Shown piece after piece: positions 5,784 to 57,716 of a stretch of 64,000 nt of DNA; position 1 is the first letter of the stretch, and each line of letters starts with the position of its first letter. The stretch spans positions 62,001 to 126,000 of IMG/VR virus record IMGVR_UViG_3300050014_000823; one strand, 5' to 3'. The notes under the pieces were generated by a model, which saw only the letters and a list, made by a program, of their open reading frames with translations, was not told the origin of the DNA and ran no database searches. Both the position numbers and the translations under genes were made by a program.

Positions 5784-6726
5784 TCTTATTTTAGCTTCTT
5801 CGTCTTTTCTGCCCTGCCAGTAAGCCAAATCTTCTGGTTCATCACTATACTTGTCATGGTCGTAGTCCCTGCGATTATGTTGTGCGTCTTTATGACCAAG
5901 TTTGTTGGCTTCCTGTTCTTCGTCTGTTTCGTAATATCTGCTCATTTTGTGATTGTTATTAATAAAGTTATTTTTCGAAGTCAAAGCCAACAGTGAAGTT
6001 AACTTTTTCGGCTTTAAGTACTTCTTCAATGAAATATCTCATAGAGAGTTCTTTTTTATTCTCCCTATTGACTTTCCAATATTTTCTCTGAATTTTTGCA
6101 CGTTCATTTGAAGTTACCTTGTCCGGATATACGTATTGTACTGCACCAGTACTGTTACAGAACATATTAACATCCCGGTCAGAATAGAACTTAGCTTGGT
6201 ACATGCCATATTCATACCACAAATCAAAGTTTTCTTTGTCGATATGATATACGGTGTCAGTAACTACTTCGTAGTCTTCATCGTAGCCTTCGCCTCTATT
6301 CAATATTATAATTGTACCTCTCATATGTTTTATATCATCTGTGTCAGTTTTGTGCTGCCATATTATTAGTTATTAAAAAATAGTAAATATGCAATCAGTG
6401 TGAAGATGAAGGTAAACAAGAATCTGTACCTTCTCTGTTGACTGTTTTCTTTCTTTATTAAACTCCATACAAGTGTGATTATAAACCACACAATTAAGAA
6501 TGATATGAATCCTGCTCTGTTGTGTATCATCGGTATTGACTGTTAGTTTCACTTACATCAAAGAGTACTGCTTTGATTTCATCCCGTCTCTTTTTCATGT
6601 CTTCGAGATTATTCGTACTCCAACCACCATCTTCGGTACTGATTATCCACTTATTCAAGTATGATAAGTCTTTTCGTAGTTCTGCTATAAGTTTTGCGTT
6701 CATATGAAAATTTGTTGTTACAGGTG

Positions 6727-50129: not shown

Positions 50130-50693
50130 ATGGAAACCGCAGATACAAAAAGATTAGGTCACGTAATGGTAGACCTTGAAACAATGGGAAACAAAAGTAA
50201 TTCTGTTATTTGCTCACTCGGTGCTGTCGAATTTGACATCAACACAGGTGAACTTGGCAGAGAATTCTACACAAGAGTCGATATGCAATCCTGCCTTGAC
50301 AGAGGCTTAATTGTCAATGCTGATACTATTGAATGGTGGCTCATGCAGAGCGAAAGTGCACGTAAGAAAGTTACAGAAGGTATTGGTAAGAATCTTGCAC
50401 AGGCACTCTATGAATTCAAACTTTATCTCGAACAACTCGGTGCGAACACTGTTCAACTTTGGGGGAATGGTGTACGTTTTGACATGGGTATTCTCGAAGA
50501 TGCTTACAGAGCATGCAACTTAAAAGAACCCTGGAATTTCAGATGCGAAAGAGACGTGAGAACACTTGTTTCTTTTGCTCCAGAAGTAAAAGACCACTTT
50601 CCAAAATTCGGTACTGAGCACAATCCAATTGACGACTGCAAGTATCAAATCGGCTATTGCACAGCGATTTGGCAAAACTTAAAAGGAATTTAA
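50130..50693 (+). CDS. DEDDh 3'-5' exonuclease
   Basis: MVDLETMG, WW, WGNG..FD, RDVRT, HNPIDD. Confidence 0.88.
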   Translation: METADTKRLGHVMVDLETMGNKSNSVICSLGAVEFDINTGELGREFYTRVDMQSCLDRGLIVNADTIEWWLMQSESARKKVTEGIGKNLAQALYEFKLYLEQLGANTVQLWGNGVRFDMGILEDAYRACNLKEPWNFRCERDVRTLVSFAPEVKDHFPKFGTEHNPIDDCKYQIGYCTAIWQNLKGI

Positions 50694-50698
50694 TAATT

Positions 50699-50724
50699 AA
50701 GCAGGAAAATTTTCCTGCTTTTTT
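50699..50724 (+). terminator. Intrinsic terminator
   Basis: AAGCAGGAAA..TTTCCTGCTT-TTTT. Confidence 0.75.
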
Positions 50725-50753
50725 GTAACATTTTCATTTCCTTTACGTATAAT
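50724..50753 (+). promoter_or_regulatory. Phage promoter motif TGTAAC-N18-TATAAT
   Basis: tgtaacattttcatttcctttacgtataat. Confidence 0.8.
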
Positions 50754-50758
50754 CACGC

Positions 50759-51553
50759 ATGGCAAAGAGAAAACCTATAGACCCCGAAGTACGCAAAAAA
50801 GAAATGCTTGAAACAGAGTGTAGAGAAATGCGTGAAATGATTGTTGTTGGTATCTTACCACTCAACCCTACGAGATTTTTCGCTGTTGGCGAAAGAGTAC
50901 AGTGGGGAGCATTGGAAGAAACCTACATCAGACAAATCTTTGAAGGTGGCGTATATTATCTCATTGAAAGTATAAATGTTAAACGTTACAGAGACCAACC
51001 CGGTGAAAATGAAATTCGTTACATGGGATGGATTGACCTTTACAAATACAATCAACGTCAACCCACAAATTTTGCCAAACCCGAAGAACATCGTATAAAT
51101 TATCTCAACTCAGGAATATCTTCATTACTTAATATGGTGTATCATTCGGGAGTTGATTTTAATGTTGACTATCAACGTGACCATGTATGGACTCTCGATG
51201 ACAAGATTGCTTTAATTGACAGTATATTTGGCAATGTTGATATTGGCAAGTTTACGTTTGTTCAGCGTGATTTCCGTGTTGAGGGTAAAATTTATGAGAT
51301 TCTTGACGGTAAGCAAAGACTCTCAACCATTGCAGAATTTGTCGAAGGCAGATTTTTATATCATGGTTATACGTTTGCAGAATTAAGTGGTTATGATAAG
51401 CACAGGTTCGAAGCACACCCAATTTCTTGGGGATATTTGGAAAGACCAACTAAACGTGCTATATTTGAAACCTTTATTAAACTCAACACCTGCGGAAGAC
51501 CGATGAAGAACGAAGATATTGACAAAGTAAAAAAATTATTGGATGAACTCTAA
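50759..51553 (+). CDS. DUF262 (ParB-like/GmrS) domain protein
   Basis: YQRDHVW..LIDSI, ILDGKQRL, FIKLN. Confidence 0.85.
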   Translation: MAKRKPIDPEVRKKEMLETECREMREMIVVGILPLNPTRFFAVGERVQWGALEETYIRQIFEGGVYYLIESINVKRYRDQPGENEIRYMGWIDLYKYNQRQPTNFAKPEEHRINYLNSGISSLLNMVYHSGVDFNVDYQRDHVWTLDDKIALIDSIFGNVDIGKFTFVQRDFRVEGKIYEILDGKQRLSTIAEFVEGRFLYHGYTFAELSGYDKHRFEAHPISWGYLERPTKRAIFETFIKLNTCGRPMKNEDIDKVKKLLDEL

Positions 51554-52025
51554 ACCCACATTCTTCCTTGATATGGATGGCGTTATGGTTACAGAAAGAC
51601 AACTTTTTGACCAAATGCATCCCGAATTTCATTTGAGTTATTTCGACCCAGAATGTGTTCAGATATTAAATGAGATATTGTCAAACTTTACCGACTTCGA
51701 CTTGATTTTATCCAGCGATTATCGGTATAATTACGAATTTGACATCATTAATAAAGCCTTTAAAGAATACGGAGTCAATGGCTTACTTTCCGATATTACC
51801 CCCAATCTATGGGGAGTAAGATATAAAAGCTATCAACAACTTGAAGAATGCCGTGCAGAAGAAATTCTTGCTTATGTCAAAGAGCATGAACTTACAAATT
51901 GGGTCGCAATTGATGACCTAAACCTTTCCCCTTGGATTCCCGATAACTTTGCCAGATGTACCGATTATACTCTGGGCATCAAGCAGAGTGGAGTTAAAGA
52001 TAAAATTCTCAAAATCTTAATTTAA
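51543..52025 (+). CDS. HAD domain protein
   Basis: FLDMDGV, LSSDYR, RAEEI, AIDD. Confidence 0.8.
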   Translation: MNSKPTFFLDMDGVMVTERQLFDQMHPEFHLSYFDPECVQILNEILSNFTDFDLILSSDYRYNYEFDIINKAFKEYGVNGLLSDITPNLWGVRYKSYQQLEECRAEEILAYVKEHELTNWVAIDDLNLSPWIPDNFARCTDYTLGIKQSGVKDKILKILI

Positions 52026-52029
52026 AACA

Positions 52030-52596
52030 ATGAAAAACGAAAAATTGGAACTTTTGTTGAACAAGATGGTCACTTATGAAAAAAGTGAAAAACTTGTGTC
52101 TTTGGTGTTTTCTTATAAGGGTTTCCTTTATAAGAACGGCACAGATTCTTACTACATTAAGGTAGTTGAAACCGAAGTCGGACCTACACAGCCTGGTCAG
52201 ATAATCTATTTGAGCAAGGGTGATGAAGACCTCATTACTTTCGCTGCAAAGCCTAAACTTATGCGAGTAAGTTTAAAATCATGGCACTACAGACTCATGC
52301 AGTTCGTTCTCCGTGATAATACTCCAACACCACGAACCATGCAGAATGGTTGTCCGTATTTCTGGCTGTTGGTACTCTCAATGCTTGCATTACCTTTCGT
52401 ACTGATTGGCAAAGGAATAAAAGGAATTTTCCTTGGTGTTATTGGCATTATCAGATGGTGTCTTAAATCGTTGGTTAACGGTTGGCTCCAGAGTATTGAC
52501 GATGTTATGGCATACGAACTTTACTGGAGAGGTAATTACAGTAGCAATTATGGTGTAGCAATGCCGAAAACCGCTAAGTTATACTTCAAGGGTTAA
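52030..52596 (+). CDS. Hypothetical membrane protein, probably interrupted by an IS607 insertion
   Basis: Ends at GG junction; can be continued in frame at 57331. Confidence 0.5.
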   Translation: MKNEKLELLLNKMVTYEKSEKLVSLVFSYKGFLYKNGTDSYYIKVVETEVGPTQPGQIIYLSKGDEDLITFAAKPKLMRVSLKSWHYRLMQFVLRDNTPTPRTMQNGCPYFWLLVLSMLALPFVLIGKGIKGIFLGVIGIIRWCLKSLVNGWLQSIDDVMAYELYWRGNYSSNYGVAMPKTAKLYFKG

Positions 52597-52688
52597 TCAA
52601 CTGCTACGATAATATTTCACAAAATTATACAAAAATTAATAATAATTAACAAAATTTTTCGTACTTTTACAAAAAATATACTATTTAT

Positions 52689-52904
52689 ATGAAAAAGATT
52701 ATTAAAATTATGGAAAATTTGAAAAACCAATCGTTGAAAGTTGTCCGTGTTGATAAACACGAATTCGAACTTGATAATGGTGATGTGTATCCAATACCTT
52801 TCGAATTGGATGTTGATGAAGATATCAGCGTTGAAGAATTTCAGAAGATTCTGGACTCTTCAAAAGAACTGATGCTAAAGATACTTGAACAGTCAAATGA
52901 ATAA
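52689..52904 (+). CDS. Small acidic protein translationally coupled to tnpA
   Basis: Stop overlaps tnpA ATG (ATGAATAA); preceded by CTATTTAT. Confidence 0.65.
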   Translation: MKKIIKIMENLKNQSLKVVRVDKHEFELDNGDVYPIPFELDVDEDISVEEFQKILDSSKELMLKILEQSNE

Positions 52905-53487
52905 GTTATTATCCATACAACAAGTATCTATGACTCTTGGTGTCACCAAGAAAACATTACGGATATGGGATAACGAAGGTAAACTCATATCAGTTAAAAC
53001 CGTTGGTGGACACCGTAAATACCGTGAAGAAGACATTAATAACTACATGGGTGAACATAGTGTTGAACCAGTGATAACAGGTGTTGCCACATATAGTCGT
53101 GTCAGTTCACATGAACAGAAAACTAAAGGAGATTTGGACAGACAGTCTCAGAGGATTTCTGAGTACTGTGCAAAGAAGAAATACAGCGTGGAACACATTA
53201 TTAAGGATGTTGGGTCTGGACTTTCGGACACCCGTGTTGGTTTTGTTAAACTCGTGGATTTGGTTATTAAGAAAAAAATCAGTAAAATTGTAATCGAAAA
53301 CAAAGACAGGTTAACCAGATTCCAATTCAATCTGATAAAGACATTCTTTAACAGTTATGATGTTGAACTGGAATGTGTGGATAACAACAATATATCCAAT
53401 GAGGAAGAGTTTGTGAACGACATAATGATGCTCATGGCTTCCTTCTCAGGAAAACTCTACGGGAAAATAATAGTAACTAAAATATAG
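52897..53487 (+). CDS. tnpA: IS607 transposase (MerR-HTH serine recombinase), C-terminus truncated
   Basis: TLRIWD..GGHRKY, YSRVSS, DVGSG, KDRLTRF, SGKLYG then abrupt end. Confidence 0.9.
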   Translation: MNKLLSIQQVSMTLGVTKKTLRIWDNEGKLISVKTVGGHRKYREEDINNYMGEHSVEPVITGVATYSRVSSHEQKTKGDLDRQSQRISEYCAKKKYSVEHIIKDVGSGLSDTRVGFVKLVDLVIKKKISKIVIENKDRLTRFQFNLIKTFFNSYDVELECVDNNNISNEEEFVNDIMMLMASFSGKLYGKIIVTKI

Positions 53488-53533
53488 AACAATATTATAC
53501 AAATATAAACTTTGGTATAGTTTTTGTAGTGTT

Positions 53534-54139
53534 ATGTATATGATTGGAATAAAAGAAGCAGCAGAATTACTTGGAATTACTCCCAAAACATTAAGATTAT
53601 GGGAGAAAAACGGTAAAATAACGAGTCATAGGACTGAAGGTCAACATAGAAGATATGTAGTTTCAGAACTTATCGGTAGTCGTGGAGACAAACTATTAAC
53701 AATTGCTTATGCCAGAGTATCAAGTTATGACCAGAAAGATGATTTAAAACGACAAGAATTGGTATTGGAAAGTTATTGTGCGAGTAAAGGATTTGAATTT
53801 GAATTAATTTCTGATTTAGGTTCTGGAATGAACTACAAGAAAAAAGGACTTATCAGATTAATAAAACTGATTTGCAGTAATCAAATTGATAGATTGGTAA
53901 TCACACATAAAGACAGATTATTGAGATTTGGAAGTGAGTTAATTTTTATGCTTTGCGAAATCTTTGCTGTTGAAGTTTGTATAATTAATAGGAGTGAAGA
54001 TAGCACCTTTGAAGAAGATTTAGCCAACGATGTTTTGGAAATTATAACTGTCTTCAGTGCAAGATTATATGGAAGTCGAAGCCATAAAAATAAACAGATA
54101 ATACAACAATTAAAACAGGTAGCCAAAGATTTGAAATGA
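53534..54139 (+). CDS. tnpA: IS607 transposase
   Basis: YARVSS, DLGSG, HKDRLLRFG, FSARLYGSRS. Confidence 0.95.
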   Translation: MYMIGIKEAAELLGITPKTLRLWEKNGKITSHRTEGQHRRYVVSELIGSRGDKLLTIAYARVSSYDQKDDLKRQELVLESYCASKGFEFELISDLGSGMNYKKKGLIRLIKLICSNQIDRLVITHKDRLLRFGSELIFMLCEIFAVEVCIINRSEDSTFEEDLANDVLEIITVFSARLYGSRSHKNKQIIQQLKQVAKDLK

Positions 54140-55311
54140 AGTCAATTAAGGTAAGATTAGAACTAAACAATAAGCAGACTACACTTGCCAATAAACACGC
54201 AGGAGTGGCAAGATATGCTTATAATTGGGGAAAATCTGTCTGTGATTTGGCAATACAAAATAAGGAGCACAGACCAACAGCAATTGATTTACATAAGAAA
54301 TTTGTTAAAGAAGAAAAAACTATTAAGTCTTGGTTGTATGAAGTATCCAAGTGCAGCCCACAACAAGGTTTAAGAAATTTGGATGAAGCATACAAAAGAA
54401 CATTCAAAGTTAAAAGTAGTCATTTTCCTAAGTTCAAAAAGAAAGGACAACACGATAGTTTTTATCTGGAAGGTGCTATCAAAACTAATAGTAATAAAAT
54501 TAAAGTACCTAAGTTTGGTTGGTTAAGATGTTCAGAAACATTACCAGAATGTGAAGTCAAAAATGTTGTTATAAGTAAAACTGCTAATCAATGGTTTATT
54601 GCTTTTAAAATACCATTTGAACCACAGATTACTAATAAGGTGAATGGTGTTGTCGGTGTTGATTTAGGTATTAAAACACTTGCAGTATTGTCAGATGGTA
54701 AAGTATTTGAAGCAGTTAAACCATATAAACGAAACAAACGGAAATTAAAAATACTACAAAGAAGATTAAGTAAGAAACAGAAAGGTAGCCAAAATAGAAA
54801 AAAAGCCTGTGTGAAGATAGCAAAACTACATTACAGGATAGCAAACATTAGAAAAGATACCACACATAAATTAACAACATATTTAAGTAAAAACCACACT
54901 GAATGTGTTATTGAAGACCTTTGTGTTCGTGGAATGAGTAAAAATCACAAATTAGCATCAGCCATATTGGATGGTGGATTTTCAGAGTTCAGAAGACAAT
55001 TAGAATATAAGTGTCAATGGTATGGTTCAACACTAACAATAGTTGATAGATTTTATCCAAGTTCAAAGACTTGTAGTGGATGTGGTAATGTTAAAAAAGA
55101 ACTAAAATTATCTGAAAGAGAATATGTTTGTGAGAATTGCGGATTGGTGATAGATAGAGACCTAAATGCTGCAATTAATTTAAGAAATAAGTCGGTGAGT
55201 TACACCGAATCAGCCTGTGGAGTGCCTAAACAACTTGATACTTTTGTATCTGGTGGCGCAATGAATCAGGAAGTAAATTGCAATGTTCAACATTGTGTAA
55301 GTTTTACGTAA
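54136..55311 (+). CDS. tnpB: RNA-guided endonuclease TnpB
   Basis: RuvC GVDLG, IEDL, DRDLNAA; zinc finger CSGC..CENC. Confidence 0.95.
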   Translation: MKSIKVRLELNNKQTTLANKHAGVARYAYNWGKSVCDLAIQNKEHRPTAIDLHKKFVKEEKTIKSWLYEVSKCSPQQGLRNLDEAYKRTFKVKSSHFPKFKKKGQHDSFYLEGAIKTNSNKIKVPKFGWLRCSETLPECEVKNVVISKTANQWFIAFKIPFEPQITNKVNGVVGVDLGIKTLAVLSDGKVFEAVKPYKRNKRKLKILQRRLSKKQKGSQNRKKACVKIAKLHYRIANIRKDTTHKLTTYLSKNHTECVIEDLCVRGMSKNHKLASAILDGGFSEFRRQLEYKCQWYGSTLTIVDRFYPSSKTCSGCGNVKKELKLSEREYVCENCGLVIDRDLNAAINLRNKSVSYTESACGVPKQLDTFVSGGAMNQEVNCNVQHCVSFT

Positions 55312-55387
55312 CGGTTAAAGGAGTTGATTTAACCGAACCTCAAATTTTTGAATTATTCGAAAAAGAATTATTATAAATTAGTTAATT

Positions 55388-55750
55388 ATGGAAAGACAAA
55401 TTAAATTTAGAGCATGGGACGAAGGTAATAAAATCATGCACAACAACTTTCAATTCATTCGTTCAGGAGAAGAAGGTAATGATTGGATAGTATTCACATC
55501 CGATAAACAAACTCTTAAAGATAAACAGCATCCATTAGAAAATCCTTATTTTCAACAACAATTGAAAATAATGGAATGGTCTGGAATCGAAAACATCTTC
55601 GAAGGAGATATTGTCACATTAGGCGAAATTGATGGAGAGGGTGTAGTTAAATACAATGAAGACAGATTTTATGTTGATTATGGAACTACGCATACAAGAG
55701 TGAGTAAAAATCATAAAGTATTAGGAAATATTTACGAAAAAACTGAATAA
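55388..55750 (+). CDS. YopX-family protein
   Basis: IKFRAWD..IFEGDIV..VLGNIYE. Confidence 0.85.
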   Translation: MERQIKFRAWDEGNKIMHNNFQFIRSGEEGNDWIVFTSDKQTLKDKQHPLENPYFQQQLKIMEWSGIENIFEGDIVTLGEIDGEGVVKYNEDRFYVDYGTTHTRVSKNHKVLGNIYEKTE

Positions 55751-56193
55751 AATGAGTGGAGAAGTAGAATTCGGAAGATGTGATATTTGTAAAGAGGATA
55801 AACCTCTTGAAAGGACATACTATCATTATGACATTAAATGTGAATGTCATTCACCCCGTCATTTTGAATTGGTCAGGCATTGTAAAGATTGTGTTCCAGT
55901 AGAACCTCTTGAAACAACCTTAACTATTAAAATAGAGACATTAAGAATATTATTACACTTGCCGAAACATTAATAATATGAAATCACAATATAAAATAAT
56001 TAAAAAATTTAAACCCACAAAAATAAACGGGATTGATTTTTATTCTGATGTACAGGTGTGGAAAATGATTGATATGGCATACGAACAAATTCGAAACAAA
56101 GAAGAAATATCAGAACCAATGGAATCAGGCGCAGAGTTTTATTGCCCTGATTGTGGTAAAAGTGTTTACAGTTGTGGATGTTAATTTATAAAT

Positions 56194-57327
56194 ATGAAAC
56201 TAATCCGTTCAACCAAATGTAGTCTGAAATTCGCAACAGCGAAGAAGCAGAATGAACTATCGGTCATCTTGAGTGAATACTCGAAGGTTGTTAATATCTT
56301 CATTGACTATTTCTGGTTGAATGCTGATAAAGCAACTAAAGGTGAACTTCTTAAACCAGTTGTTGATATTCCCGAAACATGGTTATCAGCACGACTGAGA
56401 AAAGTAGCAGCCAGAGAAGCAATCGACATGATTAATGCCAGTAAGCAAAGGTGGAAAGAAAAAGCAGTGAAGCCAGTTCATAAAGGTAACAGAATGTATG
56501 TTAGTTGCACCATTGCTGATTTGGTATCCACAAAGAACAACGGATATAAAACCGAAGACAGTTTGAGGTTTGATGCTTGGTTACACATAGCAAGTGTTGG
56601 TAACAAAATGATAATGGACTTACCGATTAAATATCACAAACATTTCAACAAATATAATAACATCGGTAAGAGATTGAATTCATATATCATCACCAAGAAT
56701 TATGTCCAGTTCAGTTTTGAGATAATCACCGAGACAAAAAAGGAAGGTAAACATTGCATCGGTATCGACACTGGAATAAACGCACTGGCAAGTCTTAACA
56801 ACGGCAATCAGTATGGTCTGGACATCAAAGGTTGTATCGAGAGAGTTAAAAGATGTAAGCAGAAGTCCAAAGGTTATTATGTTGCTAAAAGAGCGTTGAA
56901 ACAAAGAATTGATGAAACAGCGAAAGAGATATTAGTAAAAGAAAATCCAGATTTAATTGTTGTTGAACAACTAAAAAAGATGGGATATAAAAGTAAAGCC
57001 AAACGCTTGTTGGCTAAAAATATCAGGCGTTCTATCGGAACTTGGAATTGGAAGTATTGGCTCAAAAGGTTAGAAGCACAATGCGAGATTAACCGTGTTA
57101 GTTTTCGCAGTGTAGCACCTTATTACACCAGTACAACCTGTCCAGTATGTGGTCATTCTGATAGGGGAAATCGACTCGGTGAAGTGTTCTTGTGTCTATC
57201 ATGTGGTCACAAAGACAATGCAGATATAAATGCGGGTAAGAACATTTTGAATCGGTTTCTCACGGGACAATACGGTGCTCGTTACAAGGAAATAAAGGAT
57301 GTGCAAGTTTGTGCAGATTTATTTTAA
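56194..57327 (+). CDS. tnpB: Second, divergent TnpB
   Basis: GIDTG, VVEQL, TSTTCPVC..CLSC..NADINAG. Confidence 0.9.
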   Translation: MKLIRSTKCSLKFATAKKQNELSVILSEYSKVVNIFIDYFWLNADKATKGELLKPVVDIPETWLSARLRKVAAREAIDMINASKQRWKEKAVKPVHKGNRMYVSCTIADLVSTKNNGYKTEDSLRFDAWLHIASVGNKMIMDLPIKYHKHFNKYNNIGKRLNSYIITKNYVQFSFEIITETKKEGKHCIGIDTGINALASLNNGNQYGLDIKGCIERVKRCKQKSKGYYVAKRALKQRIDETAKEILVKENPDLIVVEQLKKMGYKSKAKRLLAKNIRRSIGTWNWKYWLKRLEAQCEINRVSFRSVAPYYTSTTCPVCGHSDRGNRLGEVFLCLSCGHKDNADINAGKNILNRFLTGQYGARYKEIKDVQVCADLF

Positions 57328-57716
57328 CGGTAATGCAGAAGCATTGCTACAAATGCAGAAAATGGGATTAAAAATCGATTTTAATTAAAAAATTATAAAA
57401 TTTTATAATTGTTTACAGTATTTATTGTAAACAATCGTAAAATGGCAAAATATATTAAAGAAACAGCAAGAATTGACGTTAAGTTCATTGACGCAGCGAC
57501 AGAAGAAACTATCCTTGAAGTACCAGACAGAAACTGGATGAATGTGGGTGAGATATTGAGTGCTCGTCACGGAGATATGATACTTCAAGCAAAACTTAAA
57601 GGTAAACGATTACCAAAAAAAGTATTGATTTTGGTACTATCTGAATTGGTTCTGGAAGAATAACGTGTTTTTTAAGTGTTTTAAATGCGCATAGAAGTGA
57701 TTTTATGCGCATTTTT

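Follow-up and report, generated by a model that had tools for sequence, protein, structure and literature searches.

What is the 4.74-kb block at positions 52593 to 57330 of this window: a composite transposon that traps phage genes between two insertion sequences, or one transposon into which another has inserted? The window is the whole 64,000-nucleotide stretch analysed here, bases 62,001 to 126,000 of the linear virus record IMGVR_UViG_3300050014_000823 (299,144 bp, CheckV completeness estimate 91%). The block holds two IS607 recombinase genes (tnpA#1 and tnpA#2), two genes for TnpB nucleases (tnpB#1 and tnpB#2), a YopX gene with small open reading frames (ORFs), and AACGG ends, all of them features that an initial annotation, made from the sequence alone, had described. 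That annotation took the two IS607 elements for a 4.7-kb composite that had inserted as a unit into ORF 52030, such that excision at GG restores the ORF. Our analysis makes it likely that the block is one IS607-family transposon, here called element A, with a second IS607 element, B, nested inside it, and that DNA was deleted at both.

Element A is made up of the following parts.

52593–57330, plus strand: outer element A, with left end, orf71, tnpA#1, cargo, tnpB#2 and right end; a 4.74-kb block including B, about 3.08 kb without it.
52590–52592, plus strand: left-junction GGG, resembling a target site or target-adjacent motif (TAM), here AGGG.
52593–52688, plus strand: left end of A, a 96-nt A/T-rich stretch that starts TTAATCAACTGCTA and holds repeated ACAAAAT-like motifs.
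52689–52904, plus strand: orf71, an accessory ORF of 71 aa that is conserved in the A family and overlaps the tnpA start by 8 nt.
52897–53487, plus strand: tnpA#1, an IS607-type serine recombinase gene with Pfam MerR helix-turn-helix (HTH) and Resolvase domains, native in sequence to 53465.
56194–57327, plus strand: tnpB#2, the gene for the cognate RNA-guided nuclease of A, with a TNB domain (Pfam).

A search of viral contigs with TnpB#2 returned 44 related loci (63–100% amino acid identity), and in at least 25 of these an orf71 homologue and a tnpA#1-type gene stand upstream of tnpB on the same strand, forming one element with a shared left end and right end. The gap between tnpA and tnpB varies across the family from none (L056, L058, L063) to about 2.9 kb (L034, L038, L043, L069). 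Against its closest copies (89–95% nucleotide identity) the window is similar exactly over 52588–53465 and 56183/56194–57331, and because DNA similarity stops at these points we place the left end at 52590–52593, the right end at 57330/57331 and an internal break at 53463–53465; comparison with relatives also sets the true start of tnpA#1 at 52897. All 15 left flanks of the family end in GGG, with A or G before it in 14, after which the element starts TTAAYYAACTGCTA, and right ends read AACGG followed by T in 27 of the 28 relatives scanned. Both elements in the window terminate in AACGG (55310–55314 for B, 57326–57330 for A), their left ends align in register from GGG (spacing 870), and a second TnpB#2-like copy at the start of the genome loses similarity directly after GAACGG. 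Since the flanks differ for most copies of A, these copies represent independent insertions.

A composite transposon consists of two insertion sequences that bracket cargo, each with its own ends. Here tnpA#1 has no right end of its own, tnpB#2 has no separate left end (as the annotation had anticipated) and uses the one at 52593, B is complete and internal, and tnpA#1 and tnpB#2 are partners in many loci. We read these two as the cognate genes of a single element family and not as parts of a composite. An HTH-first serine recombinase with its TnpB, a GG core at both ends and an NGGG target place A among IS607 elements, although the tnpA#1 of this copy lacks its last ~30 residues. IS607 elements are usually regarded as minimal insertion sequences, the compact members of the family carrying transposition genes only in about 1.7–2.5 kb. 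Members of the A family, at 2.4–5.0 kb and with orf71 and passengers such as a helicase, an M24 peptidase or YopX, fall outside this compact type, and A is better named an IS607-type transposon with cargo. Its lineage has members in large phages from metagenomes of peat, sediment and other sources.

The extra gene orf71 may encode a regulator or directionality factor. Its AlphaFold2 model (predicted local distance difference test score 86.7) forms a helix, three strands and a helix, with no fold match in the PDB (best E 0.33); no Pfam or PHROG family was found, and an Atlas search returned only unnamed viral clusters. Homologues (L034–L067) are 58–74 aa long, overlap tnpA in the examined A-family copies that retain tnpA, and share the invariant core VxRV..EFEL..G...P...EL...EF. 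In L051 and L052 (positions 5823–6000) an orf71 fragment is fused to a fragment of the cargo gene orf73 directly upstream of tnpB, a deletion derivative; therefore an ancestor with YopX/orf73 cargo lost tnpA and most of the cargo.

The sequences beside element A come from two phage genes.

52030–52596, plus strand: gene A remnant, the first 188 codons of a membrane-protein gene of about 465–480 aa, ending AAG-GGT-TAA with the stop supplied by the element.
57329–57388, plus strand: gene D remnant, the last 18–19 codons (GNAEALLQMQKMGLKIDFN) and stop of a 172-aa DEDD-exonuclease-like gene; from 57331 also the predicted TnpB#2 guide template.

Homologues of ORF 52030 (31 viral and 71 metagenome loci) measure 449–491 aa; the closest, at 69–83% identity, read ..PSTAKLYFKG-SDDDFLAYFLNEKY.. 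(SDDDFLAYFL) and go on into a coiled region and several membrane helices, and the gene weakly matches phrog_944, a membrane protein. After gene A the relatives carry a gene of ~205 aa, one of 81 aa, sometimes small extras, and then the 172-aa gene D, which has weak RNase_T/Rv2179c-like matches and ends ..DDAMGNAEALLKMKEMGLKIDTN or ..HNPVDDAMGNAEALLKMKEMGLKIDTN immediately upstream of the ORF 57409 homologue. The tail in the window is 82% identical to residues 154–170 of gene D in the relative L110 (tblastn), where the two sites are 2,526 bp apart. Element A joins gene A at codon 188 (AAGGG/T) to gene D at codon 154 (ATG-GGT-AAT in relatives), both canonical target sites. No trace of the rest of the interval was found by tblastn anywhere in the 299-kb record, and none of 31 syntenic viral loci has tnpA, tnpB or YopX at this place. 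About 2.5 kb of phage genes thus appear to have been lost at the site, and excision of A would not restore an interrupted gene.

These flanks decide against a composite whose excision repairs ORF 52030. Joining GG 52591–52592 to GG 57329–57330 does leave an open frame, as had been claimed, and both ends carry the GG and AACGG features expected of such a unit. But the flanks belong to two different genes, and the joined frame is therefore a chimera of gene A and gene D, not a restored gene; besides, 41% of all 18-codon windows in this genome are free of stops. The proposal needs a 206-aa ORF ending NAEALLQMQKMGLKIDFN, and it had itself named uninterrupted homologues that fail to continue with NAEALLQ as grounds for giving it up. 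The homologues run ..AKLYFKG-SDDDFLAYFL.. to about 480 aa, and NAEALLQ belongs to the 172-aa gene D. We also considered the tail as a continuation of gene A: the gene A profile gains only 4.3 bits from it, a value equalled by 67 of 3000 random peptides (2.2%), suggestive on its own but superseded by the gene D match. With tnpA#1 and tnpB#2 paired elsewhere as one element, we regard the composite as very improbable.

Could the gene A–gene D interval instead have been swapped by recombination between phages for a block that already held the elements? Phage genomes are mosaic, and the content of this interval varies among relatives. Both breakpoints, however, coincide to the base with the left and right ends defined by at least 15 independent copies, and both lie at canonical GGG/T motifs. 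The contigs L036 (1–4138) and L037 (1541–5605) share an A-family element together with 1.5 kb or more of its right flank at 99.8% identity. To the left of the element they are unrelated, apart from a final GGG in each; the mismatched left flanks therefore point to events at element ends. Replacement of the whole module is in our view quite unlikely, and insertion of A followed by deletion beside its ends stays the preferred account of the flanks.

The second element lies within A and cuts it.

53464–55314, plus strand: inner IS607 element B, ~1.85 kb, complete; left-end remnant, tnpA#2 at 53534–54139, tnpB#1 at 54136–55311, and a right end that closes in AACGG.
55315–55376, plus strand: gene X remnant, the last 20 codons of a 60-aa cargo ORF; also the predicted TnpB#1 guide template.

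The nesting had been recognized correctly: tnpA#1 is cut at LYG by a complete second IS607, and it loses similarity to relatives of 89–95% identity at 53465, where B begins. Its last ~30 codons are replaced by 7 foreign codons; intact relatives continue LYG-KRSVKRKKEL to the stop. The right-end GG of B is at 55313–55314, a small correction of the annotated coordinate. In its translation tnpA#2 shows a small serine recombinase with the RVSS serine motif and an N-terminal MerR-like HTH (Pfam MerR at residues 6–41, Resolvase at 57–187), and it overlaps tnpB#1 by ATGA (54136–54139), whose product has OrfB_IS605 and TNB domains with the RuvC D-E-D residues and a zinc ribbon. A GG core at an NGGG site and the lack of a target duplication complete the IS607 profile, the B-less allele reading CATGGG/TTAAAGG against ..AACGG/TTAAAGG in the occupied one. 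Over 53469–55316, B is 93% identical at the nucleotide level to copies in L076 and L077.

An allele without B exists. The contig L032, from a different sample, agrees with the window at 100% identity from 55313 through 58000 or beyond, yet it opens with an intact tnpA#1 tail (..KRSVKRKKELKEEKLKLQQLKDEIL before the stop), overlapped by the start of gene X. Intact gene X (L032:77–259) reads ..CCAACATGGG followed by TTAAAGGAG, its site being CATGGG and then TTAAAGGAG; the counterpart in the window is ..GTAACGG and then TTAAAGGAG. In two of the public sequencing runs, X3 and X4, Logan contigs bridge 53465 to 55313 by 191 other letters that hold the intact tnpA#1 tail and the start of gene X. A third run, X1, which is probably the source run of the phage, holds both alleles: a 1907-nt contig (depth 17.7) runs through B and across its two junctions, the tnpA tail and the gene X start are found on loose ends, and the element outside B has a depth of ~35. 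B is accordingly polymorphic and, as far as sequence comparison can tell, a recent insertion.

On its left the insertion may not have formed a simple junction. B is flanked by TACGGG (tnpA#1) and CATGGG (gene X), and the 191 bp that separate these motifs are missing, a loss that shortens TnpA#1 by ~30 residues at its C-terminus and gene X by two thirds. At the left junction GGG is present and the tip is non-canonical: copies of B elsewhere (L076–L078) read GGG and then TTATAAATAG or TTGAATGATAG, the window GGG and then AAAATAATAG. B would have entered either the gene X site, with subsequent loss on its left, or tnpA#1, with loss on its right. In the truncated TnpA#1 the long E helix of the resolvase-type catalytic domain is cut short, and no tnpA-like genes were found in the genome besides tnpA#1 and tnpA#2. 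Because tnpA#1 is truncated and no other gene of its type is present, A is probably non-autonomous in this genome.

Between tnpA#1 and tnpB#2 lie what the annotation had called trapped phage genes, and as cargo they hold up.

55388–56184, plus strand: cargo block with YopX at 55388–55750 (Pfam YopX), orf73 at 55752–55973 and orf68 at 55978–56184.

The passengers of this copy (gene X, YopX, orf73 and orf68) sit between tnpA and tnpB of the single element A. L039 carries YopX (96%) and orf73 (83%) at the matching position. The YopX–orf73 pair also occurs as native phage genes with no tnpA or tnpB nearby (L099, L100), and the cargo is for this reason of phage origin. In runs X3 and X4, element A with the YopX cargo recurs at 99% identity or more between other flanks and with no depth on the flanks of the present phage; their loose ends at 52590 and 57331 show a left flank ending ..TTTTTTATGG and at least two different right flanks. 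The cargo evidently travels with element A. Elsewhere in the family the passengers include an M24 peptidase (L046), various small ORFs and a ResIII/DEAD helicase of 720–878 aa, which is found at four different insertion sites with 81–88% nucleotide identity across the element (L034:3198–5501, L038:3362–5995, L043:3143–5305, L069:3193–5508) and may be an old component of the lineage. L045 retains just the first 17 helicase codons. In L039 (4536–5270) the tnpA frame is extended by ~45 codons up to the YopX start, which suggests that there, too, cargo was joined at the tnpA 3' end.

Both TnpB proteins look catalytically intact, in agreement with the annotated RuvC triads. TnpB#1 aligns with ISDra2 TnpB over 353 residues (E 1e-55) and keeps D176/E260/D342. 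TnpB#2, only ~27% identical to TnpB#1, has D192/E258/D344 and four zinc-ribbon cysteines, invariant in 25 family members. Their candidate guide RNAs map to the 3' parts of the tnpB genes.

57137–57330, plus strand: predicted omegaRNA scaffold and right end of A, with conserved helices at 57137–57282 and a terminal hairpin near 57297–57316, ending AACGG.
55214–55272, plus strand: RAGATH-18-like RNA match inside the tnpB#1 3' end, sub-threshold in Rfam (32.3 bits against a gathering score of 44.9, E 0.003).

Of 45 pairs in the A scaffold 20 show compensatory changes, and pairing holds in 94% of cells in register against ~42% when the partners are slid in a scripted control. RAGATH-18 RNAs guide some IS607 TnpBs (PMC11061315), and the match near the right end of B may be part of a guide-RNA scaffold; the Rfam scan returned nothing above threshold. 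As proposed in the annotation, the guides should start TTAAAGGAG and TAATGCAGA. The TnpB#1 template (TTAAAGGAG) perfectly matches the B-less allele after TGGG, and the TnpB#2 template matches intact gene D after TGGG in three related phages at 16 of 16 positions. A 195-nt contig from the metatranscriptome run X19 matches the 168 nt of 57164–57331 with 9 differences, and its remaining 27 nt belong to another flank. A guide RNA made by a related copy of A should look like this, although the contig may also be DNA carry-over. Other contigs from this RNA run cover YopX, orf73 and orf68 free of errors.

How might these elements have arrived and spread? In one IS607-family element that has been studied, TnpA excises a double-stranded circle that integrates at TGGG with a strict GG requirement, TnpB needs a TGGG TAM and its guide-RNA scaffold ends UCGG, and the occupied site, with C at position −3, escapes self-cleavage (10.1101/2023.11.20.567912). 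The left flanks (RGGG) and right ends (ACGG) found here fit this published logic exactly. Each element would have inserted by a serine-recombinase crossover at the GG of an NGGG site. Both deletions are bounded by an element end and a GGG motif. They could have arisen if two copies in direct orientation at neighbouring sites recombined with each other, or if TnpA, in an aberrant one-ended reaction, joined an element end to a GGG nearby in cis. For TnpB#2 the guide RNA would be read across 57330. With RNA read across its right end as guide, each TnpB would cut those alleles in co-infecting genomes that lack the element and have the TGGG TAM next to the flank, and the element would be copied in during repair. 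No circle junctions appeared among the run contigs examined, which cannot show rare forms.

With three deletion-type cases at hand (the 2.5 kb of phage DNA, the internal 191 bp, and L036 versus L037) and with the TnpB#2 guide falling in a conserved phage gene, we venture, as a tentative and rather doubtful extension, that the A lineage is an IS607-derived transposon adapted to jumbo phages. It might ferry variable phage genes (helicase, peptidase, YopX and others) between genomes, act as an RNA-guided gene drive or competition weapon in co-infections, and reshape genomes as its recombinase repeatedly deletes DNA beside its ends.

Several points weigh against one transposon A with B nested in it and deletions at both. 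The assembly graph of run X1 branches at both ends of A, so that other copies with identical ends are present in the sample, and the assembler could have merged a copy in gene A with another in gene D, the 2.5 kb between them being in fact retained. X1 contigs of the flanks do stop 27–29 nt inside each end of A, and A is deeper (~35) than its flanks (~24–25), all contig depths being rough estimates. Two copies per genome, however, predict a depth of ~49; X3 and X4 hold A in the absence of this phage, and a second host context at a depth of ~10 explains both the excess and the division between alleles with and without B (17.7 and ~18). Nor does such a merger sit well with the tblastn result for the missing genes in the 299-kb record, or with L032, an independent assembly of another sample that shows the matching join of right end and gene D tail. 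L032 was the only other A-family insertion found at the gene D site; L180 and L181 proved to be chance matches with no related genes, and a search for the junction of the gene D 5' part with the left end, as in a two-copy form, found only the unrelated L069 site. We therefore hold a collapsed assembly to be unlikely.

The remaining points concern detail. No relative closer than 69–83% in amino acid sequence has the undeleted locus. The ~5 nt of B that follow GGG depart from the TT.. tips seen in three related copies, of which two are distinct, so that B may have been joined on its left by something other than a clean GG crossover. DNA carry-over could account for the RNA-run contigs, the activities of all proteins and RNAs are predictions, and the mechanism of deletion is likewise deduced.

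The elements evidently reside in a jumbo phage from peat, the viral status resting on the classification of the record as a virus and on its syntenic relatives, which are viral contigs of up to ~360 kb; the 20 public runs that contain the stretch are peat metagenomes. A Terminase_6C profile search of the genome gave no match, and in the phage GenBank collection the left flank was unmatched and the block itself was matched only by distant tnpA/tnpB genes. The insertion region is a plus-strand gene array in which genes for an Rv2179c-like 3'-5' exoribonuclease, a GmrSD_N/DUF262-type protein and a HAD_SAK_2 protein (50130–52025) precede ORF 52030, a nucleic-acid-processing cluster whose synteny is kept across related phages. 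Three further TnpB-like genes lie beyond the window in the same genome (C1), making five in the 299-kb record: a TnpB#2-like copy that is incomplete because the contig starts within it (6–287, 83% amino acid identity) and two TnpB#1-like genes (144431–145543 and 281025–282185, 36–38%).

Most valuable in this locus are the natural polymorphism for B and the cargo-bearing lineage. The coexistence of alleles with and without B in X1, together with a perfect TAM and target in the B-less allele, would offer a natural system for TnpB-driven spread among phages, and a lineage with passengers of up to 2.9 kb and an extra ORF would show serine-recombinase/TnpB elements as cargo vehicles in large phages. 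A literature search found work on IS607 biology, IStrons and plasmid gene drives but nothing that describes phage IS607-type elements carrying passenger genes. For annotators the locus holds a caution, in that an open frame over joined transposon flanks is no proof of a simple insertion.

Among known systems, IS607 of Helicobacter pylori and the CboIStron of Clostridium botulinum (10.1101/2023.11.20.567912) come closest: they share the N-terminal MerR-type HTH with a C-terminal catalytic domain, the downstream tnpB and the GG core, and the NGGG left flank and CGG right end seen here match their TGGG target/TAM and UCGG scaffold end. B, of canonical size (1.85 kb) and with overlapping tnpA and tnpB, is an ordinary IS607. 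A differs from IS607 by the conserved orf71 upstream of tnpA, by 0–2.9 kb of passengers between tnpA and tnpB, by its jumbo phage host, and by a TnpB just 27% identical to that of B. Unlike the CboIStron, the elements here turned up no group I intron, although none was searched for. ISDra2 TnpB of the IS200/IS605 group (PDB 8bf8, 8exa) resembles TnpB#1 in the D-E-D residues, the zinc ribbon and a guide-RNA template that overlaps the 3' end of the gene, whereas the partner here is a serine recombinase and not a Y1 HUH enzyme, and the expected TAM is G-rich and not TTGAT. ISFba1, one of the IS607 elements with RAGATH-18-guided TnpBs (PMC11061315), is alike in TnpB length (~390 aa), IS607 context and the weak RAGATH-18-like match near the B right end; the match here, however, is below the Rfam threshold and inside the coding region, whereas ISFba1-type elements have a separate ~200-nt non-coding RNA region and AGGAG/GAGGG TAMs (PMC11061315). 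Finally, as with the free-standing homing endonucleases of T4-like phages (Seg, Mob), a phage nuclease would target the element-free allele of a conserved gene, and linked genes would be expected to be carried along; in contrast to Seg and Mob, targeting here would be RNA-guided and reset with each transposition, and the nuclease comes with its own recombinase and defined ends.

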